Source of the DNA: Thalia democratica
Taxonomy: Eukaryota
Assembly (NCBI GenBank): GCA_965202585.1
Contig: OZ241832.1
Span: 6,262,001-6,326,000 of the forward strand
Direction: 5' to 3'
DNA: 64,000 nucleotides
Below are positions 1 through 52,793 of this stretch, in pieces. A model generated the notes under the pieces. It saw nothing but the letters and a program-made list of their open reading frames with translations, was not told the DNA's origin and did no database searches. Made by a program: the position numbers and the translations under genes. The number at the start of each line of letters is the position of its first letter. Position 1 is the first letter of the stretch.

Positions 1-54
1 GACTCTGTTTGTGATGAGCAACCACCAAACTGTATTTACGAAGAATGTGACTGA
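1..54 (+). pseudogene. 3' end of Tyr-motif tail exon (DSVCDEQPPNCIYEECD*), truncated by the window edge
   Basis: Open frame from position 1 to TGA at 52-54; AATAAA at 75-80; same sequence at the other two junctions. Confidence 0.55.
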
Positions 55-1089
55 TTTGTTAAAGAAACTTCTTAAATAAAGCTGATGAAATTTTTTTGTT
101 AAATGTTTTAAGCGTTGTTGTCAGATTTTAATCAGAATAAAGCCAAATGTATTTAAAACACGTTTCAACTTTTTGTAATCTAGCAACTTTACTTAACACT
201 ACTTGTTATTTTTCTAACTGATGTTTTTGTCAAATTGCTGTATATGGTTTGTAGCACAGTTGTCAGGCTGGATATCAAGGTTTTTTACAGATGATGGAAA
301 ACTTAAGTTTTTGAATTTAAACTTTTACTAGTGATGCTAATACTATCAATAAAATTATCAGTGTTTTAATTATTACGTCACTATACTTAAAACTTCGATG
401 TTTTCAAAATTTTGTAGAGTAAAAGTGGACTGGACAGAAAAACTTTGATTTTTGTATTTATTTAAAAAATTGCATGAAAAATGGGTGAATTTTACATTTA
501 GAATGATAAATCAAAATAACTGTTTTATAAGCACTGAAGTTAAAGTTTCGAGCAAGTTTTAAAAATTAGTATGTAATCGAAAATTTAGATAAAAAGTTAT
601 GGGCGAAACAAATACAAAACATTGTAAAAAATATATCAAGTATATGCAATATGAACTGTAAGTACTAATCAAAAACTAATAGAATGTGTTTGAAAGATGT
701 GAAAAAGTGACAGTTTACATAAATTCAACAGTTAAACTAAATTTTAAAGTTACTCAGCTGATGCAAGTAATTTAATTCAGCTTTGAAACAAAAACAAAGT
801 AAATCTAAGGGCTAGAAAAGTCTTAAAATGGTATGTTTGAACTTGCTTTAAACAAGAAACTAATTCTAGGGGTTTTAAAAACACAAAGTAAAAACTTACA
901 GTATTTTAGACATGGAATTTGAACAGGCGACGATACAGCGAACAACCAAGATTAATTCAAGGAAACATAAAACAACAACGTCACTCTGAATTAGTTCCAT
1001 ATAATTGTTGAGCTTGATTTAGAGCATGATAGCCGGATTATTTACTACAAATATGTATAACTTGTAGTCAACATCCAGCAAATAATACT

Positions 1090-1440
1090 AAAAACCACGG
1101 TACAAAAAAACGAAACGTTTTTTGAAAATTTCTTCCAGGTTTTTTAAGAACTTTTGCTCTTTTTTAGTACAAAAAAAATAAGCTGAAAAGTTGTTTTAAT
1201 TAGTAAAACAACGTACTATTACGAAAATTAAAATATATTTTTTGAATGATATACAATTTTTTCTATATGAATCGTATTTAATAGAATTTTGAATACTTAA
1301 CATAAAAAAAATCTTATTTCTTTTTAAAATTTCAGATTTTTACAGGTTTTTAATGATTTTAGTTCAAAATTCTAGGTTTTTTGAGAGTTTTTTAACCCAA
1401 ATTGTCTAGTTCCAAGTTTTCAAGTCTTTTTGCAACCCTG
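1090..1440. mobile_element. Non-autonomous TIR element relic (CAGGGTTGCCA-type right end)
   Basis: Ends ...CAAGTCTTTTTGCAACCCTG with CCAGGTTTTT-type subterminal motifs shared with other copies. The left TIR is not recognisable, so the left boundary is approximate. Confidence 0.55.
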
Positions 1441-4400
1441 TTTATATACTACTTTGGTACTTTATAAAGATTTTTGCTTATTATACAACTGTGGTAATTA
1501 CCTGTACTAGTAACTAACGAAGTTACTTTACAGAAATTAAACTACTAAAAAACTTTAGAAAGAAAATAAATGAATCGATGGTTTATCACAGAGAAGCTGG
1601 ACTGAATAAGTCATAAAGACTTTAAATAGGAAGTTTATTTGAACTGTGTTAGTTACTTGAAGGTAAAATAAGTATTGTTTGAGACTTAAAGTTGAACTAA
1701 TCATACAAACCAACACAACAAGATGATGATTGACAATAAAATACTAATAAAGAATGTAGTGGGCTAGAAGTAGAACTAACTTACGAAACAACAAAATAGA
1801 AATTTAATATCGTTTTAGACTTATAAACAAAGGCTATTAAGTTTAGAGAAACAATGGAGAATATTTTTTAAACAAACTGTTAATCAATTTTACAGTAATA
1901 CAAACAAAATAATGAGCTTCAAACTAAAATACAAAATCGGATCTACTTTCAATACTGTTGGAATAAAGTATGTTTGAATACGAACATGACATAATTCACA
2001 ACTAATTTTTCCACAGTTTTGTTCTACTCTAAACCAATACCTTTAAAAAATAAGTTATTTGAAATATTAAAGTTATTGTTAAAAAATAACTAACGTTAAC
2101 AACCTCAAAATAAGAATTAGTTGGCGTAACGGTATTTGATACAATTAATCGAAAGTACAGAGCTTTGAATCGTTGAAACATTGTTTTTATTGTCAAATAA
2201 ATTGACCATGTGGTTGCTTATAAATTTTAAGTAAAACAAATAACACGTTGTATGTCTAATTGTAAATAAACTAAAATAGTGACATGAACAACTTTTAACT
2301 GACTTATAAAAACAAACCGTCTACAAGATATTTGGCATTTATTAGACAGTATTAAACACCATAAAATACTTTAACTATTTTAATTACAATAGATATTGAA
2401 AAACTAAACTACAATGCAAAACTGTTGTGTTACTTATAGAACAATACCAAGGTTGTCTACTATAAAACTTAACCGTTCATATTAAAACACCAAGGATATG
2501 TACTATAAAACATTAAGCTTTACTTTTAGTTTAAACTTGTCTGTTAAAACAAATAATAAAACTATGTTTAGTATTTAGTTTGCTATGGGCTGTTAGTAGA
2601 TTAAGTACGAAACAGCATTAACTCTCAATAACAAACACTATTGGTTCAGGTTGAACAAAAGTTTAAATATTGTCAGTCATAAGAAATCATAAAAATATCT
2701 AAAAACATGAAAAGTGATACAATTTAATGTCGATAAGAGTGAAACATATTTTAGTTAACCCTAGAGTTTTATTCACTTATAAATAAATAATTATCCTACC
2801 TTTAACGACCCTATAAGAATTTCTAAGCATACAAAATACATTTTAAATATAAGTATGTATAATTATATTCAGTCTTTACTTAACCTTGGGCAAGATTTAG
2901 AACTAAATTACGAAACAAAAAGCATAACATAACAACAAACAAGACTTATACACAAACAATATCAATTAAAGAGAAACCGTAGATTCATTTAAAATAAACC
3001 TTGAAATAATTTTACTGAAACAACAACAATTTTTAATTAAAAATATAAAACTGGATCTTGAAAAGGTAAAATAAATCATGAGTAAAACATACTTTTCAAT
3101 GCGGGAACAACTTTTAAACCAAAATTTATCGAAGTATATTTAATTTAGTAAGGAATTTAAAGTATAATTAGACTTACAAATAATCATTAGAATAAGTTCA
3201 TAAGAAACCATAGAAACATTTTTTTGCCACAAACTTGAAAAAATTCTACAGTAATATCAGTGAAACATTAACTAAAATATGATCTAATTTTTTGATTGGA
3301 AATAAATAAATTATTTGTAAAAGACATTTTTGAACTAGTTCCAGGTTTTGTTAAGCTCCATTGAGTTTTATACTGGTGATAAAGAGAAGAAGTATGAATG
3401 TTAAGATAGTAGTTTAAGAAAAGATGGGAAACAAAACATAACATTTAGTTAACTGTTTTAGTTATGGAAACATATATGAAGCTTTGAGTCATTGTTAAAC
3501 CAAACAGTTTAGATTTTATAAGAATCAAAATGTAATACTTATTCTTAATGTTTTTCAACATTATTGACATATTTGCCAAAAGTACAACTTAGACAAGACC
3601 ATTACGTAAGATAGCCAAAAAAAAACTAGGCTTTAAATGGAGTTATCAAAATTTCTACAAACAATAACTAAACCAGACTTAAAATGATTTTTGAACTGGG
3701 CTAAAATAGTTTGATTGTAACAAAAGCATAAGTTAAGCTAGCTTTTGTTAATTTTTTTAGTTTAGAGGCACATTTAATGTTTGGTTGTAGAAGACCTAAT
3801 AAACTTTAAATGACGTGAAACTAAGACTAAAAATATCACATAGCTTTTATATCGGAAGTATATTCGAACTGTAATTATTATCTTTAAGTTTAAGATAGAT
3901 AAATGTTGTTTAAAGAATAAAATTGAAAATAATTAAATAAACCAGCGCAACAAGATGACAATTAGTAATAAAATACTTAGAACTTATTTTTTCCAATCAG
4001 TATACTTTGAAAATGATAGGAGAATATAAGGTTTAAGAGAAACCATAGTTTAAAGAAATTTTTAATTAATGTTACAGTAATACGAACAAAAAATTGAACT
4101 ACCAACTAAAAATACGAAATTAGATATAATTTTAATCTCGTTGAGAATAAGTATGTTTAATCACGAATAACACATAATTCTTAAAGCTCTATTCTAAACC
4201 AATATTTTCTTTAAAATAAATTGCACCATTTGAAATGATAGAACAACGTATTGACAAATTAGGGCAAATTTACGAACCAGAGTTGTCATAATACTATTGT
4301 TTCTATGCCAGTTGAACGCTGAACACTTATTAAACCTTGGTTTATTTAAAACTAAAACCTCTAGTAAATAATTTGTAAGGCAAGCAATTGGTTTAAACAA

Positions 4401-6195
4401 GTATGTTGCAAACAATTAAAAGCCAGATGCAGGGAACTCAATTGAATTTTATATTGGAAATAAACTAATTTTTTAGTAAAATTAGATGTAGAGTAAATAG
4501 TCTAAGTAGATTTGGCAATTTAAAGTAGGATTATTTCTAAAATGAGTTACGTTAAGAAGTAAAATTAAAGAAAAAAAAATCGTAAACATCTGCTTCACTT
4601 AAATTAAATATAAACACATGCATAGATTTCTAGAGATCTAACGTTTAGATGTAAATAAAATTACCCTTTTCACCTTATTTATCTTATTGAGAAATGCATC
4701 CAAAATCAAACCAACTAAATAGTTCTAGCTCATTAATAAAAAACATAAGTTAGTGTAATAAATTACGAACAACAATGCAAAAATTAAGAAAAAGCTAGAA
4801 GCTCCTTATCCATACATCTGGACACTTTAAACGATATGTTACTAAAATTTTGAGAAAGTTAGCGTACTAAAAGAGACTACAAGATGACGTAACATTAGTG
4901 GGTACTAAGACTAAGTAAAGTTCAACTAAAATACCTAAATTTAATGGACAAAAAAAATATGTTTCGTTACTATAACAATGCATACAACTTTATGTGGACA
5001 AACTAAGACGTTTGTTATGAGAAATTTGAACTTAGTTGGTAGTAAAGTGGAAATTATTTGCGCATAAAAGAACGTGCTTAATTACATGTACTTAAAATAA
5101 CTAAACTTCTTTCAAACATTATTAACTAAAAAGAACCCGTGGAAACTTGTTTTAGTAAGCCTTAAAATTATTTTACAGTAACAACAGCAAAACAATGAAG
5201 TGTCTAACTTAATTAAAATTATTAATAATATTAAAGTATAATAACGAACTTGACTTATAAACAAACTTTAGAATAAATTAAACCGTAAATAAATTCAAAT
5301 AGATAAAACCATAAAAATTTGGCTTAAATGGCACAACATAAATTACAGCTGAAAAAAAAACTCTAAACATAATCTTTAAATAAGCCTGTAAGTGGGATGT
5401 ATATTTAAACTGTAATTATTACTTGAAAGAAACAATTTAATCTTTTAGATTTATAGATAATTATATGTTGTTTATGACATAAAACTAGAAATAATCATAT
5501 AAACCAGCACAAAATGGTAATAATTAATGATTAATTAATTAGAATTTATTGTAATTTTGACATTAGTTTAATTTAAACGCAGGAATAAAGTATAAAAAGA
5601 GTTAATTGCCATATACATATGTATTATTTATTTGCACCTTATCAAATATTTATTATGATGTTATGATTACATTACCTTATCTATATTCCTTACGTACTTA
5701 AGACAGAATACACTAACTACCTTAAAAAAAATCCACCAAAGATTACCTTTTAAAACGACTTAAAAGTTTAATAAAAAGTGAGAATAATAGTAGTAAACTA
5801 ATTAGAGAAGTAGTACTAAAAAGTAAATTTACAGTTTTGAGACATGTTTACCCTTGTGTTTACATAGATTAAATCAGTAGGAAAATATAAAATATTTAAA
5901 TTAAATGTACACGCATTACAAACATACGAATTTGAGGATACTAAATGCTTATAAGCAAAAATATCATTTAGACAAGTATGTATGATAAAGTAATGCTCAT
6001 TCTCGTATACAAAAAACTTTGCTTAATCGTACTACAAAAACTATTTAAAAAAATAATAAACAAGACCTCGAAAATAAAACAGTTACTTAATTGGCGTAAC
6101 TGTGTTCGGTTAAAAAAAAATTAAAGCTGGTAACCAGTTTATCAATTCGCCATTTTTTAGTTTAGCTAAAGACAGTTTTATAGTGTTAATATATA

Positions 6196-6532
6196 CAAGG
6201 TTGCACATATCTAGTAGAAAAAATTTACGGATTTTTGAATTTAATTCAAAAATACATATATTCAAAAAATGGCAACTTTACTTTAAATAGACAATTTATC
6301 TCATTGAATTTCGAGTGAAATAAATATTTTTTTAAAGCAATACTTTAAAATACAATTAAAGCTACTTTAAATGTGTTTAAAATAAAAAAACAATGATGAC
6401 AAATAATATATATATACACATTTGATAGATTATTCGCGTCCAATCAAGATTTTACTACTTAACATGTAAAAGTTGCTTAAAATTCAAGGTTATTTCAAAG
6501 TTTCACAAGCTCCAGGTTTTTTGGCAACCCTG
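6196..6532. mobile_element. Rearranged MITE-like element (right TIR TGGCAACCCTG at 6522-6532; degenerate left TIR CAAGGTTGCA)
   Basis: The right ~175 bp matches the intact element at 57372-57653. Confidence 0.6.
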
Positions 6533-7939
6533 AATGATATAAATATTACAATAAACATAAAAAGTAGTCATTAGTATCAATAAAGTATTGTGTACTTTTT
6601 ATTTAATTGATCACAATAAAAGTTTTTGACTAAATAATAAGGAGAATAATCAGTTTAATATTTCAATTTAAATTTTATTACTAAAACAATTTTTACTCGT
6701 TTCAACTAAATCAAACGAGACCAGGCAATAAAATATTACTAGTTGGTTACCATATATGCTTAAATAGAAGAATTTTATTAAAAAAACATGTTATTCATTA
6801 TTTATTATGCATATGTTAGTAATGCCTGCATTATATGATACGTATATACTTCGCTAATAAAGTACAAAACATTTTAAAACTAAACAATATCTGATATTTA
6901 CTATGTGTCCATAACTTGTGGTAATATAAAATTCTAATTTATAATAAATGAGACCTCCCAAAATGATGACGTAATAATCATGAATAAATATAAATACCGA
7001 AATTTATGAAAAAGACATTAGATTAGTTTGTTAGATTTTAAAAAATGGCCACGTTTTCTGAGTACAAATTAAGGTGTAAATATAGAATTTTATGAAGGGG
7101 AGCAAAATAACTATATGGAAAAGTTTAGCTCACTGTCTATTCAAGTAACAATTAAAATTGTCCAACGATGCATTATGCTTGATAAAAATAACGACTACAG
7201 TGAACAACTTAAATATTTTGTGGCTAAGATACCGGTTGCAAAAATCTAGAAAAAAAAAGAGTAACTTGTACGGGTTTTATCTCTTTTAAACAACGTCAGA
7301 GTGAAATTAGTCCATTAAATCAACAGTCTTTACTTAACTTTGTTCTACATATAACAACAAAACTAAAATATAGTTACGAACTAGACCTATATGTAATCAA
7401 TAGAATTACTTTATAAGAAACCATAGAATTTTTTAAACAGCCATTAGAAAAAAAAACAATAAAACATTATTTAATTTATGACAATGAATCCAATTTCAAC
7501 TTTGTTGAACTTTTGTAAAACAAATCATTAGTTAACAATATGTTTTAATTTATCCCAGAGCTTTGTTAATTTTTAAACCAATGCTTATCTAACGAAAAAC
7601 GTCCACATAAAGTTTCTAATTATAGTAAATTATCTTGCCATGAATGCTGACGTTTTATTACTTTTAACGGAACATTTACTTAATTCTATTTCATATTAGT
7701 GATAAGCAGAAGACTTATCAATAGTCTAGAAGCTAATAAACGGTTGACGATAAAAACATATTTAGTTAATATTATAAAATTTTTGAGGCACTGTTTGAGT
7801 AATGAACTTATATTTTTACTAAAAATATAATGCATAACATTTAGTTGAATAAATATATAGTTTTCAGTTAGTAAGATTTAACATATATATTAACGGATAG
7901 ATGTAATAAAATTAAAATATCATTAGGCAGAATTACATA

Positions 7940-8830
7940 AGGCCTAGAAGTGTACCTTACTTAAAATGCGTACTTTACAGTTACATAGATAAATAAAAAT
8001 GTCTTCATTATTTTTAAATATAAAGATGCCAAACAAGCACAACAATCACAATTTTTTTATTAATAAACTTTTAAATATAAAACAACCAATTCATCATCAA
8101 AAATAAAACTAAGAATACTTATACAAACCGTGAAACTAGACTGAAAAACTCTCAAAGCTTTATACAATGCTGGAAGTATACTCGAACTGTAATGTAAAAG
8201 TTTAATAAAAAATAATTGAAATATTAAGAAATAAGGTTGAAAATAGTTATACAAACCAGCGCAACAATGATGAAATGCTAAAAGCTGATTGTAGTTTGAA
8301 AATTATTTTTTTTTTGAAAATACTAAGAAAATCTACACACATCAAAGTTTTTATTTAAGAAATACTTTATATTCAAACTGAAGCAGTCTCAAAAAAAATA
8401 AACAAAGTTTATGTAGAAAAACAAAAAGATTGAAAAGTGAACTTGAGAATCAATTGATCAATTTGATAGCTAAACTAAACTTTTGACCGTACTGAAATAC
8501 ATAAAGCCCAGAGACGTACCTTACTTTAAATGCGTAACTTACATTTTTAGATACCCTAACATTTTTACACAGATAATTAAAATGTCTTTATTATTTTAAA
8601 ATATAAAAATTCCAAACAAGCACGAAACTTATATCTTGTTTTTAAAAATTAAAAAAAGTTAATTAAACAAGACGCTCATTGAAATCATACAAAACTGAGA
8701 AGACTTATACGAATCGTGAAACTAGAATGAACTTTAAACAAGTACTGTTTGAGACATAAGGTGTAAATGTTCATAAAAACAACCACAACAACATGATAGT
8801 AAATAACAAAACACTAATGACTTACTGTAG
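7940..8830 (+). repeat. Old ~570-bp tandem duplication (7940-8290 / 8505-8830)
   Basis: Shared GTACCTTACTT..AATGCGTA, AAAATGTCTT.ATTATTTT..AATATAAA..T.CCAAACAAGCAC and GTGAAACTAGA motifs. Confidence 0.7.
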
Positions 8831-9192
8831 ATCGAAGATTAGTATATTTTGAAAATATCAAGAGAATATTGTCTTTTGAATCTTTTATTGATGAGAAACA
8901 AAATATTAAGAGCTTAGCAGTAAGAAATGCTATGAAGAGTAGAACATTTATTGTGGAAACACTAAGTGTTGTTTGTAAATTTCTTTTAGGTTTTAAAAAA
9001 CACGTTTTTTGGTCCATTTTTAGTTGGTCATTTAATTTAAGTAAAAAAATTGTCTTTAATGGCATAACAACATTGTAAATATACTGTAAAGGTACTCCTA
9101 GTGTGTTATACAATGAAATTATATATTGGTGATACAAAAAAATTCGTTACTTTACATAAAATAAAAAATAATGTTTTTATTAACTTTGGTTC

Positions 9193-9244
9193 GAACTGTT
9201 CTGGGTTTTTCCAGGGTTTTAGGTTTCAAAAAGTCGACAACATA
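9193..9244. mobile_element. Degenerate right end of the same TIR family
   Basis: CTGGGTTTTTCCAGGGTTTTAGG...AAGTCGACAACA resembles 19524-19567. Confidence 0.35.
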
Positions 9245-10569
9245 GCTCTTTACAGGGGCTACAATCAATAATAAAAGTGATGAACCGAAAAAGTAAATGT
9301 GTAATCAACAGTAAGGAGTTTTTTGTTACTTGTGCCAAGTGGACATTTAAAAAAAAAATTTGTGAAACCTCGGAACTAAGAGCTTAATAAAAACTTAATC
9401 ATGAAATTATAATCGCAGCTATTTTAACATACTTAAACTAATCAAAGCATATAAGAGTCCACCCTATTAGATTTAAAATCGAAAAAGCGAGTTTAATCTG
9501 AAATATAAATTTGTTAATTGAATTAGTTAAGAAAGTAGTTTGACTGAATGGGTCATGACTTTGAATGAATAACGTATACGAAGCATTAACTTTGCTTTTG
9601 TCTAACAAATAACAAAGATAATGCAGTATCCCGACATGAAATATGACATGTTTAATTCAACCGAGAACTAAAAAAGTAAAAAATGAGAGTACTAACTATA
9701 AAAACCAAGTAAGTTCACAAACAAGTTTAAATATATCAAAAATAAAAGAACATTAGTCATTACTTTCCACATAAAAAATTGTTAAACAAAATATGTTTGT
9801 TTAAAGACTCAATAATTAAGAAAGGACCCACTGATTGTATATATTAAAAACAATTCACGTAGCTATAGAAAACGTAAACATAAACTGTATTTGTTTAACA
9901 ATAGTAAAATTTTTATTACGAAATGAACGGTTTAGTTAACAAATTAAAAAAAACTTAAGTATGACTAAAACCTGAAGTATTTATTGGTAACACGTTAACG
10001 TCTATAGTTAATATGTAAAGTTACTCTGATTAACTTAAATTTATAGAAAAAATACTTAAAATAGAAAACTAAATGAAATTAACTAACTGCTGGACAAAGC
10101 AATCGTAAAACAGTTAAAAATCATATATGTACTTGAAAAAAACAACTACTTTGTTTGATTTTAATATGCAAAGTTGCAACTTTAGAGAGTTAAACATTTC
10201 AGTTGGAACATTTGTTAACCTTTTATGACAAAATAGTTTGGCACAGATTTAGTCTGTTTATTAGTTTACTAAAAAAGTTTTTATGTACTTTGCATATCAA
10301 ATTATAAGGTTCTGTCTAGATTAAGTATATTGTTTATAAAAATACGCAGTAACAAGTATAGTACATACACACATATAATTGAGCTGTTACTTGTTAAAAC
10401 TAAATAATTTTTATATAGAAAGTTTTGTGTTTAAGTTTACCATTGCTATCTAAGCATTTTTAACTACTTGCAAAAGACAGTTTTTAAATATAACTTGCAT
10501 ATATCTATATGATAAATATTACTACTACTAGAATAATTATTAAAAAACTTATAATCAATGAGAATACCG

Positions 10570-11330
10570 GATTATGACGCAAGAACGTAGTAATATAAAA
10601 TAATTAATAAGTTCAAGGATTTGACGTGGAAAAAAGCAGAAAACGAAAATACAATTGATGCAAATGATTTGTAAATTTACCTAATTTTATGTGGACAAGT
10701 TAAGACGTAAATTTTTAGTAGAAGTATTTAAAACAAGTGGCTCATGAGTAATATATATCTGTTATCTTTCATACAACTAAAGAGTGAAATTAGTCTGTTC
10801 TATCTAATAACTTCTAGTGAAAATAAAGTTTGAAGTACTAGCACATTAACTCGGACGTAACTCATTAAAAAACTGGTAAATCTTAGTATAATAGATGTTT
10901 TATCTTCAATTATTAGAAAGTTATTTGCTTAAAAAGATAGTTTATAAACATAACTTAAGTTTATTTTACATAAGTAGCAATAACCTAAAAAATTATATAA
11001 AAAAAGAGACTGCCTCATTATGACGCAACAATATGGTAAAACAAAATAAAAAAAAATTAAGGATTTAATGTTGAAAAATAGCAGAAAAAGAAAAGTTCGT
11101 ACAATTGAGGCAAATGATTTTTTAAATTTCCTAACTTTAAGTGGACAAATTAAGAAGAAAATGTTTAATGTATAAGTAGCATAAATTTAAAACAAGTGGC
11201 TCATGAGTAATTTATATCTGTTATCTTTCATACAACTTGATAGTTTAATAAGTCTGTCATATGTTTTCGTTAAGTGAAAATTAAATTCAGTCATGTATTA
11301 GTCATGACTTAAAAGTACTAGCACATTTTC
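10570..11330 (+). repeat. Old ~446-bp tandem duplication (10570-10860 / 11016-11330)
   Basis: Shared ATTATGACGCAA, ACAATTGA.GCAAATGATTT, AAAACAAGTGGCTCATGAGTAAT.TATATCTGTTATCTTTCATACAACT and AAGTACTAGCACATT. Confidence 0.85.
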
Positions 11331-11336
11331 TCGTAC

Positions 11337-11891
11337 ATCCAAGTCATAACTCAAAAAGGTGCCGACCAGCAGAGTAACCGGGCCTAAAGGACAAGAATTA
11401 AAAAAAAACTAAGGGCAGGCCGGGAGATGACAGGTGCGAAGCACCGTGTCATCGACCGGCCGTAGCCCTTTGTTTTTTTTTAATTCTTGTCCGCTACCTA
11501 AAACTTACCAATCAAACTCATCAATGTAAAACCACTCAGTTATTAATTGAAAAACTAAAACTGATATTACCGTCAGGCCTTTAATGGTTAAACACTAATA
11601 AGTTAGATCATATAAGCTCAAGGTTGTTTAAAAGATAACAGATAAAGACCGTACAAATATAACGCAAAAACGTACATTTGTTTGGCAGTTACGCTACTCA
11701 CGGTCCATTTGACAGAAAAAGGTGGCCTCCAAGAAAAAAGGCCGCGAAGAAAAAGAGAGAAGGAAAAAGTGAAAATTTTTTCGCCGGCGGAGCCGGCGAA
11801 ATGCCTTAAAAATTATTTTAAATAATCTACACCAAAAATTTCCCACCCATTTTCACATTAGGGGAATCCCCAATTTGAAAAAAATGGGTGA
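11337..11891. mobile_element. GC-rich non-coding insertion with three hairpins (probable non-autonomous element)
   Basis: 104-bp inverted repeat 11389-11492 with loop GCGAAGC; 10-bp stem 11779-11801 with loop GCGGAGC; imperfect palindrome 11844-11890. Boundaries approximate. Confidence 0.65.
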
Positions 11892-12038
11892 CAGGGCTTT
11901 AAAAATTAGTGCGTACCTTACGCGGATGCGTACTTCTTAAAAATTACCTTTATTTGTAACAGGAAATGTGTAATTAAAAATTTAGTGCGTACTTTATGCG
12001 GGTGCGTACCTTATGCGCTTAAAATGGTTTAGAGCCTA
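11892..12038. mobile_element. Small TIR element with internal GTGCGTAC subrepeats (~75 bp)
   Basis: Ends CAGGGCTTTAAA / TTTAGAGCCTA (imperfect TIR); two AGTGCGTAC..TA.GCGG.TGCGTAC subrepeat heads. Confidence 0.6.
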
Positions 12039-17100: not shown

Positions 17101-17430
17101 AGTAGTGTGGGTAATTTCTGTTGTTTGTACTATATATTAAAAAACATTTCAATCCTACTTTTAGATGCTACTCTTGTAGAAAATAAAAGTCTGGCCATCT
17201 GATAAAAATATGTGCTAAAAAATATTTACAATCAAAACACAACAACATTTTCTGAAAGAATTCTGCAATTATTCTAAAGTTAGTTTTTGAAATACACACT
17301 TAAAGATTGTTGTTTAAAGTAAATACAAAAATACTTACTACTTTAGGAGCTTTTATAACTTCATATGTATTTTTCTTAACTTTCTTATAAATAAAAACAA
17401 AATAAAAGTCTTAATCTAGCAAATTTTCAG

Positions 17431-23827: not shown

Positions 23828-23882
23828 CCATTTTTATGGTTTTATAAACTTATAGATTTTATAGTCATTTTAAACCTTAAAA

Positions 23883-37713: not shown

Positions 37714-38268
37714 ATCCAAGTCATAACTCAAAAAGGTGCCGACCAGCAGAGTAACCGGGCCTAAAGGACAAGAATTAAAAAAAAACTAAGGGCAGGCCGG
37801 GAGATGACAGGTGCGAAGCACCGTGTCATCGACCGGCCGTAGCCCTTTGTTTTTTTTTAATTCTTGTCCGCTACCTAAAACTTACCAATCAAACTCATCA
37901 ATGTAAAACCACTCAGTTATTAATTGAAAAACTAAAACTGATATTACCGTCAGGCCTTTAATGGTTAAACACTAATAAGTTAGATCATATAAGCTCAAGG
38001 TTGTTTAAAAGATAACAGATAAAGACCGTACAAATATAACGCAAAAACGTACATTTGTTTGGCAGTTACGCTACTCACGGTCCATTTGACAGAAAAAGGT
38101 GGCCTCCAAGAAAAAAGGCCGCGAAGAAAAAGAGAGAAGGAAAAAGTGAAAATTTTTTCGCCGGCGGAGCCGGCGAAATGCCTTAAAAATTATTTTAAAT
38201 AATCTACACCAAAAATTTCCCACCCATTTTCACATTAGGGGAATCCCCAATTTGAAAAAAATGGGTGA
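37714..38268. mobile_element. Unit 2 copy of the hairpin island
   Basis: Same sequence as 11337-11891 at +26377. Confidence 0.65.
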
Positions 38269-38415
38269 CAGGGCTTTAAAAATTAGTGCGTACCTTACGC
38301 GGATGCGTACTTCTTAAAAATTACCTTTATTTGTAACAGGAAATGTGTAATTAAAAATTTAGTGCGTACTTTATGCGGGTGCGTACCTTATGCGCTTAAA
38401 ATGGTTTAGAGCCTA
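38269..38415. mobile_element. Unit 2 copy of the GTGCGTAC-subrepeat element
   Basis: Same sequence as 11892-12038 at +26377. Confidence 0.6.
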
Positions 38416-41400: not shown

Positions 41401-43477
41401 AACATTTAAATAGTATATAAAACAAGTGCTTAACTCTAAATTCTACAAAACTGCTTTTAACTTATTTTAAAATTGTTTATCACTTAATAATTTGTTCAAG
41501 ATGAATTATGTGTATTTTAGAAACCTTTATACATCAGCTTATAGCACTACATATAAAGCTTTGTAAACTCATTTTAGTTAAATTTTAGTTTAAAAAGTTT
41601 TGCCATGTTTGCCAAAAACTACAGAGTTTTCGTAGTCATTGATAAAACAACTTGTTCAACTTTAAATTTGAAGCAAATAGATAAAAAACCATATTGTGCA
41701 TAGTGATTGAAAGCTTAACAAAGACACTGTAATAATAACATTTATGAATGACTGAAAAAAACTTTGCTTGTATTGATTATAGCAAAAAAATCCATATGTC
41801 ACATCAAGAAAAAAAAAACAGTTTAATAATCTATGATTCCCTCTCACAAAATTGTTAGCATGTTCACTGTTTTGAACCTTACATGTTAAATAAAAGCTGA
41901 TCATGCCATTTCAATGTTTTTTTTACTATGAAATATAAAGAAATCCTTACTTAAATAATACCTTCATTCTATTAAGATGTTTTAATTATTTTCAAATAAA
42001 CAAGCAATAGGTAAGATGTCAAGTGTATTCACTGACTTGATTTCTTTTTTGTCTTAAGTACTAATTTATTACACTAGCATTAAATGTAATACTGTTTTTT
42101 TTTAATTTACTAAATAAATAATGTCACATAAATAAATGATAAGTTCCTGAAACAACTCAAACTAATGATCTCAACATACAACTTTGTTTTTTTACATTTG
42201 AAAACAGTATAGTCTTAAGTTAAAAATATGTTGTTACAATGAAAATATGGTCAACTGTTGTTATAATTGAACAATGAGTTTCAAGCAGCTTTAAGCCACA
42301 AGGAAGATGGTAGCAAAACTGATCAGTTTAAATTTTCCTCAAGTTAGTTAAATGTTTTATTTAACTAACAGATTAATAATTACTAAACAAGTTTTTCAAT
42401 AGACTGCTGTAAAATATTCTCATGTAGCTAGAACAAGTTATATCTTAAAGCTGTTCTATATTTGGAAAGTTTTAATTGTGTTCTTTTTTATAACTTCCAA
42501 CAATAGACTAAAGTAGTAGTTGAAAAATTTGCAAAATTTAATTTTTCAAATGTTTTTATATCAAATAATTTGTTCTAAAACAGGTGTACAGTCTTGCAGA
42601 TTTAACAAGCAAAAGAAAAACTAAACTTACCAAACCAAGCTATGAAAAAGAACAGCTGATCAACATCATTTAGTTTCAATGAAAACCTTATCCCAAAATA
42701 ACCTTTGCAATGGTTAGTTTCAAGTATAAACCTAATAAGTTTGAAAGCTCTAAACAAAAAAGATTTAATAAAAATTTATTCCAATGTCTTAATAGTATAA
42801 CTTGAAAGTTTACTTTAAAGTTATTTCACAGAACATTACATTAACTTAAAACTACTTAAAGTTCCTTTGAAAATGTCTGTATCTCACAAACTAGTAAATG
42901 TAAATTTTTTAAATAATTTTGATTTGGTGTAAAACACATCACTGCAAAGAAAATTTTATCTTTAGACAGTACTCTTAGAAATTTTTTTAATTCAAATAAG
43001 TTTAAACTTTATACAAAGGTTATATTAGTTTCTATAAAATTCAGTATACAACTATAACCTAATCTAGTTCAACAAAAAAAAATTGCCTCAATTTTTTCTA
43101 TATTTGTTGGTTATAATTAAAGTTAATTGAGTTTAGATAGTGAAACTGATTCTTTTACAAAATAACAGCTTTAAATAAACTTTTTCAAAACTAGACTAGT
43201 TTTGTGATTTATGTTAGATTTTTTTGCTAGTTCCTAAATGCATTTAACTATTTAATATTTTGTCTGTTAATTTACATTGCATTAGACTTGGTTTTTATGC
43301 AAACCTCTTTTGCACAGTATTCAAGAAACTAAACTCAGATTTAGACTAGCTTGTAACATACATGATTTCTACAACTATGAAATGATCAAAAAAAAAATAA
43401 ATACGTTGTAAGTATATTCAAATAGGTATTTTGTACAATATCAAATGTTTAATAAAAATAAATTATAATTTGTCTTA
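38416..43477 (+). pseudogene. Unit 2 copy of decayed LRR block 2
   Basis: Same sequence as 12039-17100 at +26377. Confidence 0.6.
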
Positions 43478-43807
43478 AGTAGTGTGGGTAATTTCTGTTG
43501 TTTGTACTATATATTAAAAAACATTTCAATCCTACTTTTAGATGCTACTCTTGTAGAAAATAAAAGTCTGGCCATCTGATAAAAATATGTGCTAAAAAAT
43601 ATTTACAATCAAAACACAACAACATTTTCTGAAAGAATTCTGCAATTATTCTAAAGTTAGTTTTTGAAATACACACTTAAAGATTGTTGTTTAAAGTAAA
43701 TACAAAAATACTTACTACTTTAGGAGCTTTTATAACTTCATATGTATTTTTCTTAACTTTCTTATAAATAAAAACAAAATAAAAGTCTTAATCTAGCAAA
43801 TTTTCAG

Positions 43808-43959
43808 GCAACACAAATCAAGTGTGAAAGTGAATTTGAGTGGGCATGGGGAAATGCAGTCCAAGATGTTCTGTGAACGACCATGCACTTGATTGCAGTG
43901 ATGGAGTAGTGACCTACGTATCAATTCGAAAGACCAAAGCCATCTTGGAAGATTGGAAG
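43808..43959 (+). pseudogene. Unit 2 copy of the orphan exon-like segment
   Basis: Same sequence at +26377. Confidence 0.45.
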
Positions 43960-44366
43960 GTGAACTGAAGGACAAATTATTAAATGATCAACTCAATAAA
44001 TAGAGTTTGCATAATATGAACAGAACTTTTTTCATTTATTTATAAGCAGTAGGCTAGTATTTATTTTTCATCTCAGTAGGTATTTGTATGTTTTTGAGTG
44101 TTTTAATTGGATCAGTCTAGTTTATAGAAATTTTTAATATGTTTTTTTTCTCTGTTTACAGTTTGTTAGTGTATCAGTAAACAATTTCATTCAATAGTCT
44201 ACATTTCATCTGTGTAAATAAAATTATAAATTTCTATATAAATTTTTGCTAGAGAAAAAGAAAGATAAATATATAAATCATAAGCTGAAACTACTGATAA
44301 AATTTCAAACTAGTAATAGGTAGACTTATTTTATGATTACTATTGTTTTTTATTTTTTTAATTTAA

Positions 44367-44997
44367 TTTTTATTTATTAACCATTACAAGTGTTTCTTTG
44401 TGATTGTTTATTTTGTTATTTAGTTTTAGTTAAACTCCTATTTTTAGATATTTACACAAATTTGAAAAAATAAACTGATAGTTTTAATTGAAAGGATATA
44501 TTTATTTTATACTTTTTGTTTAGTTTAGTGAAACTCTTTTGTTTTTTTTGGATACAGCTTTGTTTTGCTTTTTTATTTAATTTTTAAATATTGCAGCTTG
44601 ATTTTTTTTTTAATGTTATAGCGCTCTATTTTATTGTTACTTATTTTAACAAGTTGAAATAAGTTAATAGTTGAATCCAAATTGTTAAACGAACTTTTTA
44701 AAACTTCCACTTTTTTTTTGTTCAAGCCATATAAAAGGTTATACTGTTTGCTAAAGTTATTGATAAATTTTAAAGTTAGAAACATTTCAGATTGTAACTT
44801 TACCTTCTAACGTAGAATTCAATATATACATTATGAGTGTATAATGGTAGATACGATTATATGAAACTTATTATTGATTTGGATATTTTGTTTACAAAAA
44901 TATTTAATGTTGCAAAGTTTCATAGATGTTTTCGTTTTAGAGTTTAAACTTTGACTGTAAAGTTTTTTCTTTCAGTTTTTATCTAATTATAATTTTG
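44367..44997 (-). pseudogene. Unit 2 copy of the inverted LRR fragment
   Basis: ORF 44573-44785 is identical to 18196-18408. Confidence 0.5.
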
Positions 44998-45580
44998 ATT
45001 AAAGTTGGGTATGGAACTCGATGACCGAGAGGTCTTTTTTGTGTATCCAGGTCCTTTAACCAAAAAATTATAAACAGTTTTTCGTTTTGTATTTTTTTTT
45101 GTATTGAATTTTGTACCATTTATTTTTATTTTAAAATCAAACTTTACTAGGGTTTTTTGCTAACTGTAGTATGAAATAATTTACACTTAACTACTACTTA
45201 ACAACTAACTAAAACTTAAAAAAATATTTTTAATAAGTTTTAAATTATAACCAGTAAGCAGGAAAGACTTTGAAATAAAAGTTAGTATAAAAAAACATAC
45301 AAATAACTTTTTTTAAATAGTTTTCATTAGAAAGTTTAAGAGCATGTTTCACACTTGTCATATTTATTTTAAATAGGTAAAAGTATCATTATAAAAATTA
45401 GTTATAGTTAGAAAAAAAAATGTTCAGTTAAGTTACAACTTAACTTAAAACACTTTATATTTTTCTACACATTTAACCATAATTAAGTTTATGTTTATTA
45501 TAAGTTTGACTAGTGTAATTATGTTACTATTACAACTTATTATTTAATTTATATTATTTTTAAGTATCTAGTTTTTAAAA

Positions 45581-45944
45581 CAAGTTGCAATATAAAACGG
45601 CAGGTCTGCTCGTAAGTACAGACTAGCCACTAGATTTTATGAATTTTTCAAAAATTTTGAAAGTACACATTTATTGGTCTATTTTAAATTCAAAATTAAG
45701 TTTAAGTTCAAATACTGTGTTTAATGCTATTTTAAATGAGTTTTTAAATGTGAAAAACTTTGAGACAAAAAATATTATAGATTTTTTATGTCAAGTCAAA
45801 ATTTTACTACTTAACATGTAATAATGTTTAAAATTCATGGTTTTTTAGTAATTTTTGTTCAAATTTTCTCAGGTTCAAGATTTTTTTTACCTAAATTAAC
45901 AGAATCCAGGTTTTTCCAGGATTCAAAGTTAAGTCGCCACCTTG
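45581..45944. mobile_element. Unit 2 copy of the degenerate MITE
   Basis: Same sequence at +26377. Confidence 0.55.
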
Positions 45945-47068
45945 TATGTATTATATTTAGTCAGGGCTTAACTAGTGTATTTGGAAGTGGTATTCATTGT
46001 TGATCATTTAACTTTATGTTAATCGAGATTTTCTCACACAACTTATTAATCAATGCTTTGCTCTGATTAACTTTCGTTCATGTTTTTATTAAGTTTACTC
46101 CAAGATAGCTTTATTCAATATATTAGTTCAAAGTTCTAACTTTTTCAAATTGCAAATTTATTTTAATTAAAAACTACTTCAATAATGTTTAATGCGTCAG
46201 TGAAAAGTATAAGAATAATACAAGGTTCACATATACTCATTTTCATAAACTCCCCCTCGGCAACAAGTTTAAAAATGTTAAGTCTTTTACTAGTTATTTA
46301 CTTTTTTAATATTCATTCAATCACCATTTAGTGTTGCCTGATGATTAAAATAAACCAAGAGGGTTATATAATGTGTTTCAGGAAACTTTGAAAAAGCTAG
46401 CGAGCTCAACGAACATTTTCATATATAAACTTTATTGTCTTATTTAACTAAACTTTGTTTTCTCTTTAACATTTAAATCTACAGAAAGTGCTACCATAGA
46501 CAAGGACATACTTTTGCCAAATTTAAATTTTAACGCGATTTTCTAAATAGCGTTAAGGATTTAAATATGCAAAGTTATAATGTAATCATTGATATCAAAA
46601 TCAATTTAGCAATATATCATTCGTTGAAAATCTTCAAGCTATAATATTTAACTAAAGTTTCTATGAATTTAATTGAGCGATGTTTTCCAACGATTGCTTA
46701 TTTTAACAAATTTCACAGTTCATAGTTGTAATTTTTCCGAACCCAGAGACAGTTTTTTTATTAAGAATTTTGCTAAACAACCAAGGTGTTCATTGCATTA
46801 TAAAATATGTTTATTTGTAAGCTTTATTAAACATATTTTTGTCATCTGCCGCTAGGCAAAAGTCAAAAAATAATTGCTCCGTTATCAGACATAGCCTTTT
46901 TTAGAGAAAACTACTTATTTAATTTCCTCTTTGCTAGACAGTTATCCTGATAACAAAAACTGACGCAAAAGGGTCGTTGCCTGATAAAGCTAGAGAAATT
47001 TTTATAAGTTTGTATGTCTAGATAACATAATACTGTATTTTGAAATGTTTACATTTTAATCTTTACAG

Positions 47069-48478
47069 GAAACTTCAATATGGACGAGAACGAACTTGAG
47101 TCGTCAATAAAACTAAACAAAATTTTGCTTAACGAAATTGAAGATAATAAAATAAAAGCATAAACTATGATGTCCAAAACCGATGTGACAAATTTTTTAG
47201 TAACATATTCCTCTTCTACTATTTTCAAGCTGTTAAATTCATCTAAAGCTTCCATGAGCCTTATAAAACGCTGTTTCCAATGATTAGTGATTCAGACAAT
47301 TTTTTGGAGTTAGATTTTATCTCTATTACAATTATACTTTCACGCAGTGCTTTAAACATTGATTCAGAACTGCAAGTATTTAATGCACTTCATAGCTGGA
47401 TATGTCATGACATAACTGAACGTAGGAAGTATGCGAAACAACTTTTATCTAAGGTTCGGCTTCCGCTTCTGTCTATTCCTGCATTAAAGCAAATTTTAGA
47501 CAGAGTATCATCAAATTATTATGAATGTAGTAACTTAATCGAAGCTGTATTAAACAGAAAAAAGCTGTTAAACTCAAACATATGTAATATCACAAGCAGG
47601 TACTTCAACCAAACTAATTTTAACATATTACTGTGTGGGGGCAAAAATGTTAACCTAAATAAAGTTTCTAATGATGTTAAGTTATTTAATGCAAACAACT
47701 TTAGGGAGGTCAATTATTTGCCACACATGAAAGAAGCCAGATGCAATTTCGGAGCAGTTTGTATAAAAAGTGAAATTTATGTGTTCGGTGGCATTGATTC
47801 TTCTTTAGAACAAAAAATGTCAGTTGAAAAATACTCAATGTTACCAATACTTGAGAACAAATAATTAACATGGTAGATGATCGCATCTTGTTTTCTGCTT
47901 GTTCTTTTATGGATAATGTTTATATCCTTGGCGGCCGTATAAATAGTGCTATAGGAATCTACAAAACAGCAACTTGTTTTCAGTTTAATGTAACTAGTCT
48001 GAAATGGAAAGACGTATTAAGAATGAACAACGCAAGAATTCTTTCAGCTTGCTCGTTATTTGAAGAAAGAATAATTGTATCTGGTGGAATGTAAAGTGAT
48101 GATAGTTTAAACACTGTTGAAGCTTATGACCCTATTGGAGGTACTTGGAAAAACATGCCAAATATGATTATTGAAAGAGATGGTCACAAATCAGTTGCAG
48201 TGAAAAACAAACTTTTTGTAATTGGCGGATCTTTTGCAAACAATTGTGAAGTTTTTGATTCAACTATTAATAAGTTTACTCTGTTAAAACAGCCTACGCT
48301 AGCTTCTGGATTTAATTTATATGACCCTTCTGGAGTGATTACAATTGGCAGTAAGATTGTTGTTTTTCAGTTTAACAGTGATGTCAAAACCTACGATACT
48401 ATTAACAATGAATGGTCAAAAAAAAAATTTGAATCAACAGAAAGTATAGAATATTTTTCTTTGGTGAAATGTTTCTGA
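47069..48478 (+). pseudogene. Unit 2 copy of BACK-Kelch pseudogene A
   Basis: Same lesions; one SNP at 47845. Confidence 0.9.
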
Positions 48479-49403
48479 AACCTTAAAGAGAACTTTTTAA
48501 TAAAACTCAGTAAAAAAAAAAACGAGTACAGTTTTTTCAATCATTGATTTAATTTTGTTGATATCTACTGTTTAAACGTGATGTAGATACTGGGTAGAAT
48601 TAAAAGAAAAACAAGAAACTATTAACGTTATTTTGAAATCTTTCAAGATTTAAACTTAAATAATGTTTAAGTTATGCGAAATTTTTAGTATTTTTAAACA
48701 AATCTTCCTTAAATATTTTCTTATACAAACATTTTCTTATTTAGATAATTTATTAAATTTTAAGGTGCACTATATTAAACGATTTTTATTAAAACATAAC
48801 AATTTATTCTCTACTTCAAATACGTTTTTTAAACGTAAATAATTAATTTGTTTTAGATTTTTTAGACCAACTAAGTTTTTTACAGTCAACGATTTATAAA
48901 CTTTATTGGTTTTTACTAGTCATACTAGAAAAAATTTTGAAAAACACGATAAAAATACTTTTAAAAAATACTTTGCTCTAGTATTAACCTTTAACTGTAA
49001 TAAGTATGTTGAATATTTATACCGACACTAAGGTTTGCTTAAATTTACAGATTATATCAAGACATATCAATCAACTAATAACCAAAGTAAAAAATCTTTA
49101 TTGAACTGTTAGTGAACTAATAACATTAATATATACTTTTAAAAAATGCAGTTTTCATCTATAAACAAGACCAGCTGCAGTCATCAAAATTTATGCAAAT
49201 TCGTATGCAACAAAATCGAATGATAATGACAAGTATATATATTTTTTTGATTTTTTTTCTAAACTTACAAACACTTAAAACTAAACACATCCATCGTTTC
49301 TGGGCAGCAAATTTGACCAAGCATAACACCAAAAATAACGGTGTATAAGGAAATAATCTGACAAACGAGTTTTCAGTAGCATACTCAAACTAGTATTAAG
49401 AAA

Positions 49404-50204
49404 ATCGATATAAAAATTTGTTTAGTAACACATTTAATCATCAAATATTTTCAATCTATCAAACTCATCAAAGTTTCCATTTGAGCGCTGTTTTCCAACG
49501 GCTTCTGATTCTGAAAATTTTTTAGAGTTAGACTTTAACTCTGTTAGAAGAACACTTATAAGCAATGAATTAAACGTTGATACAGAGCTGCAAGTATTTA
49601 ATGCAGCAGATAGATGGTTGTGTCATGCCTTAACTGAACGTAGAAAATACGCAAAAACTCTTTTGTCTAAAGTTCGACTTCACCTTCTTTCAGTTCCTGC
49701 ATTAGAACAAGTTTTTGAAAGAGTATCATCAAAATATCATGAATATGCTCACGTTATTAAAGCAGTTTTAGACAATAAACAACAACTAAACTCAATCAGC
49801 TGCAATATTACAATTAGGTATTGCAACCAAACTAGTTTTAACATATTAGTTTGTGGAGGAGCAAATTATTTCCTAGATAAAGTTTTTAATGATGTTAAGT
49901 TTTTTAGTGCAAACAATTTTAGTGAATTCAGTAATTTGCCACAAATGAGAGAATGTTGAAAATCTTTTGGAGCAGTTTATATTAAAGGTGAAGTTTATGT
50001 GTTTGGTGGCGATGATGGTAAACAAGTTGAAAAGTATTCCCATTTAACCAACACTTGGGAACATGTATCTGACATGATAGATGATCGTATGTTTTTTTTC
50101 TGTTTGTTCTTTTATAGATAGTGTATATATTATGAGCGGTCTTATGGGTGAGGCTACAGGAGGGAACGATACAGCAACTTGTTTTGAGTTAAATACAAAA
50201 AGTC
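49404..50204 (+). pseudogene. Unit 2 copy of BACK-Kelch pseudogene B
   Basis: ORF 49618-49959 is identical to 23241-23582. Confidence 0.88.
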
Positions 50205-50259
50205 CCATTTTTATGGTTTTATAAACTTATAGATTTTATAGTCATTTTAAACCTTAAAA

Positions 50260-50547
50260 ATGTCAAAAAATCTCAAAAGATTAACGCAAAACGAAGCAAA
50301 AGATGAAAAAAGTTGCTTGGAAGAGCCAAGTAGAAAGACAACAAGACTCGAACATATCACACAAAATATATTCGAGTCGCTAACAAATCCTGTCAACCAA
50401 AACAGTCCTGAATTTGTTATGTTGAACAAGAAAGCAACTTTTGAAAAGCTGAACGGCAAAGTGTTTGATAAAGTTAAAGACTTCGAGAAGCAAGGTTTTC
50501 TATTTTTATGTTTAAACATACTTTATCTAAAATATTGTAAATTATAG
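50260..50547 (+). CDS. Unit 2 copy of the orphan ORF (A>D variant)
   Basis: One SNP at 50480. Confidence 0.35.
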   Translation: MSKNLKRLTQNEAKDEKSCLEEPSRKTTRLEHITQNIFESLTNPVNQNSPEFVMLNKKATFEKLNGKVFDKVKDFEKQGFLFLCLNILYLKYCKL

Positions 50548-51561
50548 AGTAATTTTAATCTAGTTGAAAATTTAATATAATTTTTCAAATTTAATAAATT
50601 TTTACAGCAGTTAATTGAATATAACAAGTAACTGTTTTTGTTAGTTAAAAGCGACTTCAATAATGTTTAATGGGTTAGTGAAAAATATAAGATTAATTCT
50701 GGGTTTTAACTCATTTTCATAAATGCTCCCTCGGCAACAAGTTCAAAAATATTAGCTCTTTTACTAGTTATATACCTTATTAATTTTCGTTTATCTACCA
50801 GTTAGTGTTGCCTAACATTATCTTAATCTAAAAGGGTGATATCGTCTATTTTACAACACTCTAAAAAGCTCGAAAGTTTAATAAACGTTTTTATATTTAA
50901 AAAATATGCTTAACTTTCATTTTCTTATTTAAAGTATAAATTCTACAGAAAACCCTATTATTGACAAAAACATACTTTTGCCAAATGTAACTTTTAATGC
51001 TATTTTCTAAACGATGTTAACAATTTAAATATGCAAAATTTCAAATAAATAAAAAAATAGTTAAAATTAGAAATGAAAAACAGTTTAGCAACATAATATT
51101 CGTCGAAAATTTTAAAGATATTAATTATAGCTAAAGTTTCTATGAACTTAATTCAGAGATGTTTGCAAACGATTACTTATACTAACAAATGGTACAGTTC
51201 ATGATTGTAACTTTTTAAAACCCAGAAACACTTTTAATTTATATAGAACGTTGCTAAATAAAAAATTAAGATGTTCATTGCAGTATAAAAAGTATTATAC
51301 TAAACAAATGTTACGAATCAAGTTTCATTTATTTCTCGCTAGGCAAAAGTCTATAAATAATCACCCGTTTTATCACATATAGCTCTTTTGATGTTAAACT
51401 TTAAAAAAAACAAATCACAGGCATTTGCTAATTGGTTGCCCTAATTGTAAAAATCGAGGAAAAGTCGACATTGTTTAATAAGGCTAGAAACCTTGATATA
51501 AATTTATATAGTTTGAATAGTAAAGTATTATATTTAGTATTCTTAATTGTTATTTTTACAG

Positions 51562-52480
51562 AAAAGAGGTCGAGCTTGTGATGTCAATGAAACTTAACAA
51601 AGTTTTACTTAACGAAGTTGAAGATAATGAAATAAACGAAGTTATGATGTCCAAAACTGATATAAAAAATTGTTTAGTAACACATTGCTCATCAAATATT
51701 TTAAAGCTTTCGAATTCATCTAAAAATTTTATGAACCTTATTGAGCGCTGTTTTCCAATGGCTTCTGATTCTGATAATTTTCTAGAGTTAGACTCTAACT
51801 CTGTTAAAAGAACACTTTTAAGCAATGAATTAAACGTTGATACAGAGCTGCAAGTATTTAATGCAACAGATAGCTGGTTGTGTCATGCCTTAACTGAACG
51901 TAGAAAATACGCAAAAACTCTTTTGTCTAAAGTTCGACTTCCCCTTCTGTCAGTTCCTGCATTAAAACAAATTTTTGAAAGGGTATCATCAAAATATCAT
52001 GAATGTGCTTACGTTATTAAAGCAGTTTTAGACAATAAACAACAACTAAACTCAATAAGTTGCAATATTACAATTAGGTATTGCAACCAATGTAATTTTA
52101 ACATATTAGTTTGTGGAGGATCAAATTATTGCCTAGATAAAGTTTTTAATGATGTTAAGTTTTTTAGTGCAAACAATTTTAGTGAATTCAGTAATTTGCC
52201 ACAAATGAGAGAATGTCGAAAATCTTTTGGAGCAGTTTATATTAAAGGTGAAGTGTATGTCCTTGGTGGCGATGATGGTAAACAAGTTGAAAAGTATTCC
52301 CATTTAACCAACACTTGGGAACATGTATCTGACATGATAGATGATCGTATGTTTTTTTCTGTTTGTTGTTTTCCTGCATTAAAACAAATTTTTAATGGTG
52401 ACATTATTGAGGCTGTTCAACAAACAACAGCTAAACTCAACTACTTGCGATATCACAACCAGGTACTGCAACCAAAGTAA
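51562..52480 (+). CDS. Unit 2 copy of chimeric BACK-Kelch gene C
   Basis: Identical ORF 51578-52480. Confidence 0.7.
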
Positions 52481-52526
52481 TTTCAACATATTAGCTTGTA
52501 GAGGTGAAAACTGTTACCTAGAGAAA
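52373..52526 (+). pseudogene. Unit 2 copy of fragment D
   Basis: Same sequence at +26377. Confidence 0.8.
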
Positions 52527-52793
52527 CATCGGAGTCTTACAAAGCACTGAACAAGCTCGAATAAGGACAAACTATATTGAAAATGCCGTGTATTTCCAAA
52601 CTGTTCAACAGGAGTCACCACACCTGACACCCAAAAGTTACATGAGCTGCCTTATTTGACGCAAAAAAGTTACGAGCAACAAGCGCCGGCATACCCGATA
52701 AACTCCAACCAAAATCCGTATTTACAACCGAATGACTACGACTCTGTTTGTGATGAGCAACCACCAAACTGTATTTACGAAGACTGCGACTGA
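52527..52793 (+). pseudogene. Terminal exon relic encoding a tyrosine-rich tail (most intact copy)
   Basis: Stop-free frame 52581-52790 (70 codons): KCRVFPNCSTGVTTPDTQKLHELPYLTQKSYEQQAPAYPINSNQNPYLQPNDYDSVCDEQPPNCIYEDCD*. AATAAA at 52814-19. Confidence 0.65.

Follow-up and report, generated by a model that had tools for sequence, protein, structure and literature searches.

KLHL proteins such as IVNS1ABP, KEAP1, KLHL12, and KLHL3 combine a BACK domain with a six-blade Kelch propeller that follows it, and their BTB domain serves both as the Cul3 contact and for dimerization. Families that evolve by birth and death, such as the nematode MATH-BTB and F-box families, the vertebrate olfactory receptors, and families linked to the major histocompatibility complex, form tandem clusters in which intact genes, pseudogenes, and chimeric fragments of mixed ages lie together and whole units have been duplicated recently. 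Higher-order segmental-duplication arrays, or macrosatellites, consist of units repeated head to tail, with length variants and patchy homogenization. The locus analyzed here, a 64-kb stretch of the tunicate Thalia democratica (hereafter the window; G000:C8:6262001-6326000, from a genome assembled into 1,833 contigs totaling 802 Mb), resembles each of these in part. An initial annotation had described it as a cassette in which relics of leucine-rich repeat (LRR) genes, a tyrosine (Tyr)-rich tail, and BACK-Kelch genes were amplified together, possibly as an immune arsenal. Our analysis indicates instead that the window is very probably a decayed stretch of a large cluster in which BACK-Kelch genes without BTB are repeated in tandem, left behind as a by-product of birth-and-death turnover, and not a functional cassette.

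The Kelch copies lie at the end of a 26.4-kb tandem unit (Table 1) and were compared by tblastn with their closest intact relative, K4, an open frame of 497 amino acids (aa) at C8:5.774 Mb. That BACK-Kelch genes are present, as first annotated, was borne out by Pfam (BACK, PF07707, E=7e-18 for copy C and 3e-17 for copy A; Kelch_6, E=3e-11). Every copy, however, is disabled, and the unit does not encode the working arsenal that had been proposed. Copy A, otherwise near full length, has at least 2 frameshifts that spread it over three frames and 2 in-frame stops. Copy B has 1 stop and 1 frameshift and is truncated at both ends. Copy C retains the two-exon layout of the family, with an intact first exon, a 1.07-kb intron, and an acceptor AG at 25183-25184. 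The first exon is lysine rich, matches no Pfam family, is 96.8% identical to a segment 1.05 kb upstream of K4, and also aligns to an older intact unit described below. A deletion of 13 nucleotides (nt) right after the acceptor shifts the reading frame relative to exon 1, and therefore a spliced copy C message would stop after six codons. The body of copy C is, in addition, truncated at aa 320, after 2 blades, with the last four blades lost. Since copy C is both frameshifted and truncated, the 300-aa open reading frame (ORF) that falls in it at 25201-26103 is a leftover and not a gene. A complete six-blade propeller, present in the intact relatives, was found in no window copy. Only four ORFs of at least 120 aa occur in the 64 kb, all four in the Kelch region, and the window is predicted to encode no complete protein. 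Finally, the ratio of nonsynonymous to synonymous substitution rates (Ka/Ks), taken over the whole gene, was 0.94 between K4 and copy C.

The window sits within a Kelch cluster of about 1.5 Mb that is arranged divergently: genes at 5.54 to 5.85 Mb use the minus strand, those at 6.0 to 7.0 Mb the plus strand. At least 45 open frames of at least 460 aa, apparently intact, occur in C8:5.54-7.00 Mb, whereas in a dead zone at about 6.08 to 6.42 Mb every Kelch match is broken or truncated and no frame reaches 460 aa. Genome-wide, there are 2,640 BACK-domain candidates; all 150 that were scored passed the Pfam cutoff, most of them in open frames of 465 to 515 aa. Intact, decayed, and chimeric genes thus stand side by side, which agrees with the suggestion that this family undergoes rapid birth and death. 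The likeness to the nematode and vertebrate families extends to the mixed ages of the copies, whose amino acid identities run from 54 to 97%, and to the recent duplication of a unit. Two differences were apparent. First, a sub-array of about 340 kb consists here entirely of dead copies. Second, the selection measured was a whole-gene Ka/Ks, 0.44 for the one intact pair compared (K4 and L006), which does not by itself show the diversifying selection on the binding surface that an immune-type role would require. A full-text literature search found no tunicate paper mentioning Kelch; the expansion in this tunicate is very large and apparently unpublished.

The intact relatives also bear on what these proteins could do. 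K4 and the intact gene of the older unit (L033) consist of a BACK domain and Kelch repeats (PF07707, E=2e-17 for K4, with Kelch_1 also matched), and among solved structures the K4 propeller is closest to IVNS1ABP (E=2e-31), KEAP1 (E=2e-26), and KLHL12 (E=5e-26). The domain order BACK, then propeller, is therefore that of the KLHL proteins. In contrast to those proteins, BTB (PF00651) was absent at E<=0.01 from K4, L033, and exon 1 and was likewise not detected in the copies of the window; its place is taken by the 78-aa lysine-rich exon 1. Because the intact relatives lack BTB, the analogy with Cul3 adaptors loses its defining contact, and the premise that these genes act as KLHL-type adaptors is unsupported.

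The 26.4-kb unit is tandemly amplified, as had been noted. Self-BLAST aligned 1-27971 with 26365-54365 at 99.16% identity over 28 kb, at an offset of 26,364 to 26,377 bp, and by BLAST the array comprises about 17 units of 20.8 to 26.4 kb each, head to tail, from about 6.013 to about 6.397 Mb on C8. The window holds units 1 and 2 and the beginning of unit 3, and the unit that follows begins at C8:6339625. A segment of unit 1 of about 3.8 kb (2.5 to 6.36 kb) is missing from unit 3, which has a 1,029-bp tandem duplication of its own at 54769-56321 (79% identity), the counterpart of which is single copy in unit 1 at 1593-2536. The unit immediately upstream of the window (L032) shares only part of its sequence with the window unit and carries 6.3 kb of unrelated sequence; therefore, the array is a mosaic of unit variants. 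Units of the array type were also found on the unplaced contigs C667, C525, C800, C1257, C1346, C910, and C233. The array resembles macrosatellites in its unit length (21 to 26 kb), its head-to-tail order, its length variants, and its patchy homogenization, and it differs from them in that the units come from the gene-plus-spacer repeat of a protein family and not from a nongenic satellite.

Units 1 and 2 are an extreme case within this array. Of the 98 columns at which they differ in a global alignment, 91 belong to the first 2 kb, 5 lie within the final 50 bp, and just 2, both substitutions, fall in the intervening 24 kb, compared to differences of 3 to 11% between all other unit pairs. Assembly duplication may account for part of this near-identity. 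If it were wholly an artifact, of haplotypes or of read overlap, there would be one 26.4-kb unit fewer and the array would still be real; the many unplaced contigs with the same units, a sign of a region that is hard to assemble, point to an artifact, as does the contrast with all other unit pairs. We nevertheless regard an artifact as unlikely. Over their first 2 kb, units 1 and 2 diverge by about 4 to 5%, with indels, unlike a simple duplicated contig end, and the next unit has a 95%-identical copy C (C8:6338459), which means that units of the 26-kb type recur.

A second component of the unit is the Tyr-rich tail. The initial annotation was right that it is real. Its 49-aa frame at 26269-26415, which ends in NPYLQPNDYDSVCDEQPPNCIYEECD, has 46 matches in the genome, and the best of these beyond the array is a 130-aa open frame (a 129-aa ORF) at C8:35.74 Mb, the genuine terminal exon of a gene 29 Mb away. 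That frame contains repeated PYLxPKSYEQ motifs and then the same ending as the relic. Two further exons lie upstream of it in the parent gene (C8:35737386-35739992; L019:7386-9992). Its terminal exon, of 129 aa, has about 8 Tyr in 65 residues and carries, besides the repeats, the motifs NPY, YDSV, and IYEDC. The first exon shows a motif of the C-type-lectin-like domain (CTLD) type, '..s(Y/W)..A...C......LAS..', and, searched alone, gave weak matches to several DEC-205 CTLDs (E=0.055) and to Pfam Xlink (E=0.12); the second exon searched alone gave no match. The second exon encodes a stalk and a predicted transmembrane helix: it closes with 19 hydrophobic residues and then a basic stretch, as expected of a membrane protein of type I. 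The tail parent is thus probably a C-type-lectin-like type-I membrane protein and not an LRR protein. It resembles type-I receptors with a CTLD ectodomain and a Tyr-motif tail in its CTLD-like motif, its hydrophobic stretch, and its Tyr-rich last exon; it differs in that the exon-by-exon CTLD matches are not significant and in that the window holds 95 tail residues and no ectodomain or transmembrane exon. No other exon of the parent gene was detected in the window by tblastn and blastn. Related tail exons in open frames of 70 to 83 aa were seen at C7:59.78 Mb, C4:23.91 Mb, and C6:67.70 Mb and on contigs C233, C1025, C1183, and C1184. Just upstream of the CTLD-like exons, on the same strand (C8:35733545-35735252; L019:3545-5252), are frames that by eye resemble exons for CAP/SCP domains of the CRISP type, either of the parent gene or of a neighbor.

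In the array, the tail is one hitch-hiking, frameshifted exon fragment. It is single copy per unit; the claim that every module is multiply duplicated and mostly disabled holds for the Kelch copies, which are multiple and all broken, and does not hold for the tail. Positions 1-51 of the window are the tail end belonging to the preceding unit. The tail begins exactly where the old Kelch fragment ends, and this junction (Kelch aa<=228, tail aa>=35) recurs in L007, L009, L010, L016, and L032, that is, in all four of the distinct array units that were examined, and also in one dispersed copy on C4 (L008). Since the same junction is found in all of these, the tail was captured once and then carried along with the unit. 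A different junction, between copy C and the old Kelch fragment, was considered as a product of homologous recombination, and this was rejected: the joined points, aa 320 and aa ~181, are not equivalent.

A capture of this kind raises the possibility that the unit, or its Kelch/tail core, is a mobile element of the Helitron-like or Pack type that picked up gene fragments, spread, and was then amplified. The joining of two unrelated gene fragments at a nonhomologous junction is what such an element would leave, and partial unit copies do occur at C4:74.83 Mb (junction included), C8:3.09-3.12 Mb, C1:13.11 Mb, and C4:84.2-84.8 Mb. We consider this improbable, however. The units lie head to tail and vary in length, and no transposase, Rep-helicase, or reverse-transcriptase domain was found in the 150 open frames of at least 36 aa in positions 1-20,650 that were searched with Pfam. 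Defined termini were not found either, in a search for them that was not exhaustive.

Taken as a product of tandem-family turnover, the unit would have the following history. The ancestral unit would have been one two-exon Kelch gene with a long AT-rich spacer, since the older unit L033 (C8:6.009-6.0136 Mb) has an intact Kelch gene of 475 aa that corresponds to copy A, with 79.8% nt identity, and behind this gene come a short remnant of the tail and the start of the unit (96%). At some point a truncated Kelch fragment was joined nonhomologously, once, to a last-exon fragment of the unrelated membrane protein gene and was copied passively from there on. Amplification may have proceeded by unequal crossing-over or replication slippage between units, because the units are in head-to-tail order, range in length from 20.8 to 26.4 kb, and show a mosaic pattern of identity. 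The resident copy A decayed by frameshifts and stops. A 2.26-kb internal duplication added the partial copies B and C from a younger sub-lineage, of which C went out of frame where exons 1 and 2 meet and lost four blades from its end. The latest step was another duplication of the entire 26.4-kb unit, unless the assembly duplicated it. The array may be viewed as a natural record of the death of a tandem family, in which frameshifted residents, an internal partial duplication, the capture of a foreign exon, and the re-amplification of a dead unit can all be read. The biology is ordinary. The anatomy of one decayed sub-array within a very large tunicate Kelch expansion is now fixed, and its value lies in annotation, where the units should be masked as pseudogenes, and in later studies of turnover rates.

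Several points limit this reading. The Pfam scan covered open frames of at least 36 aa. The array units read as sequence beyond the window were three, L032, L033, and the short loci L009 and L010, with 8 kb and 4.6 kb of neighboring units covered, and the others are known by their BLAST coordinates. The unit 1/2 pair is known from the assembled sequence. Finally, the spacer may have a regulatory or small-RNA function. A broader possibility, which we hold to be doubtful, is that the BTB-less BACK-Kelch megafamily is a diversified recognition system and the 340-kb dead array a turnover hot spot within it, which may persist as a transcribed reservoir of pseudogenes that donate to, or regulate, live paralogues. 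The pseudogene array might also be retained because it yields noncoding or small RNAs by which the live Kelch paralogues are regulated. The only observations that could be read this way are a same-strand block of 340 kb of pseudogenes in a live cluster and an exon 1 that is intact and keeps its donor site. Indels that accumulate and a Ka/Ks close to 1 are in line with neutral decay, and a retained RNA source seems very improbable.

The third proposed component, the LRR relics, was sought in positions 1-20,650 on either strand and was rejected, as no approach gave a signal. First, the strict motif LxxLxLxxNxL occurs 6 times per unit, on both strands, scattered and with no periodicity. Second, Pfam found no LRR family at E<=0.1 in the 150 open frames; the same frames gave 11 unrelated single-member matches, the best of which, DUF276, had E=3.7e-4 among 150 queries. 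Third, 10 LRR-bearing frames were taken from LRR_8 loci of the same genome and searched with phmmer against all six-frame pieces of the window; the lowest E was 0.04, which is at chance level with ten queries. Fourth, a single-repeat LRR hidden Markov model (HMM) was built from 53 repeats of those ten proteins, with reversed and dinucleotide-shuffled sequence as controls. It reached at most 8.6 bits in the unit, whereas 20 dinucleotide shuffles scored 6.9 to 12.3 bits and genuine repeats about 20. The impression of LRRs likely came from the composition of translated AT-rich DNA: GC (guanine plus cytosine) content is 22 to 30% across the whole window, and DNA of 26% GC by its nature yields many Leu, Ile, Asn, and Phe residues when translated. 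Co-clustering of LRR and Kelch genes, which the initial annotation had put forward as a check, was not seen; none of 144 LRR_8 significant matches (from the best 150 of 648 candidates scored) is in C8:5.5-7.0 Mb, the closest one on that contig lying at 17.43 Mb. That the unit is a functional, lineage-specific cassette for recognition and degradation is thus hardly credible, even with a Kelch family that is huge and clustered and a tail that carries the signaling-type Tyr motifs NPY, YDSV, and IYEE, given that there is no LRR signal in the unit and no LRR_8 match in the Kelch cluster among those scored, that all window Kelch copies are broken and the family lacks BTB, and that the tail is frameshifted and without the parent's transmembrane and ectodomain exons. 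The LRR-Kelch-Tyr immune cassette can be removed as a false lead. Separately, LRR_8-bearing frames of 298 to 397 aa were observed to cluster at C8:36094487-36113759, about 350 kb from the tail parent and 29 Mb from the Kelch array.

Table 1. Features of the window and of the surrounding array. Positions are those of the window unless C8 is given; twins are the corresponding positions in unit 2.
Feature	Position	Strand	Basis and remarks
Tandem unit 1, 26.4-kb type	1..26364	+	Self-BLAST offset; alignment to unit 2
0.57-kb local duplication, noncoding	7930..8731		7930-8145 vs 8494-8731; offset 564 bp; 70.5% identity
0.45-kb local duplication, noncoding	10541..11287		10541-10830 vs 10986-11287; offset 445 bp; 77% identity
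104-nt palindrome in spacer	11389..11492		Also 37766-37869 (unit 2) and 62508-62611 (unit 3)
Small Kelch relic fragment, older	20214..20336	+	K4 aa 68-108; 49% aa identity; tblastn E=1.7e-4; twin 46591-46713
Kelch copy A	20676..22092	+	K4 aa 26-493; 53-64% aa identity; twin 47053-48469
Kelch copy B	23061..23829	+	K4 aa 78-336; 91-97% aa identity; twin 49438-50206
Lysine-rich first exon of two-exon Kelch gene (copy C)	23883..24116	+	ATG, 78 codons, GT donor in phase 1; intact; twin 50260-50493
Kelch copy C, exon 2	25185..26040	+	K4 aa 37-320; 88% aa identity; twin 51562-52417
Old Kelch fragment adjoining tail relic	26019..26149	+	K4 aa ~181-228; 66% aa identity; twin 52396-52526
Tyr-rich tail relic	26150..26418	+	aa 35-129 of parent last exon; three reading frames; tblastn E=4.6e-30; blastn 80% over 292 nt
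Tandem unit 2, near-identical to unit 1 except first 2 kb	26365..52739	+	Alignment
Tail relic at unit 2/3 junction	52527..52793	+	One frameshift, two frames; 70-aa open frame
Start of unit 3, diverged variant	52740..64000	+	Self-BLAST; 92-97% identity, indels
Array landmarks	C8: 6013268, 6035790, 6079666, 6099076, 6122811, 6147784, 6168570		
Array landmarks, continued	C8: 6195016, 6218109, 6241202, 6262001, 6288365, 6314740, 6339625		Again near 6.383-6.397 Mb

Of the nested duplications listed in the initial annotation, those at 26.4, 0.45, and 0.57 kb are real. The two smaller ones exist in two copies each and are old and noncoding, with open frames of less than 35 aa, and Pfam gave 0 matches at E<=10 for the 10 best candidate frames within them. 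The value of 4.5 kb comes from the upstream flanks of Kelch copies A and C, which are offset by that distance; the Kelch bodies themselves are spaced at 2,218 and 2,260 bp (positions 20886, 23104, and 25364). No Rfam family reached its gathering score in the window, and Tandem Repeats Finder reported no short tandem repeat at a score of at least 100 in unit 1. The part of the spacer at 12800-16000 has relatives of 66 to 86% identity at C4:84.21-84.84 Mb, on C297 and C993, and at C1:13.11 Mb, and could be a repeat or mobile element of greater age that several clusters share. The 104-nt palindrome of the spacer is richer in GC than its surroundings, has arms that are 82 to 85% identical, and is kept in all array units.

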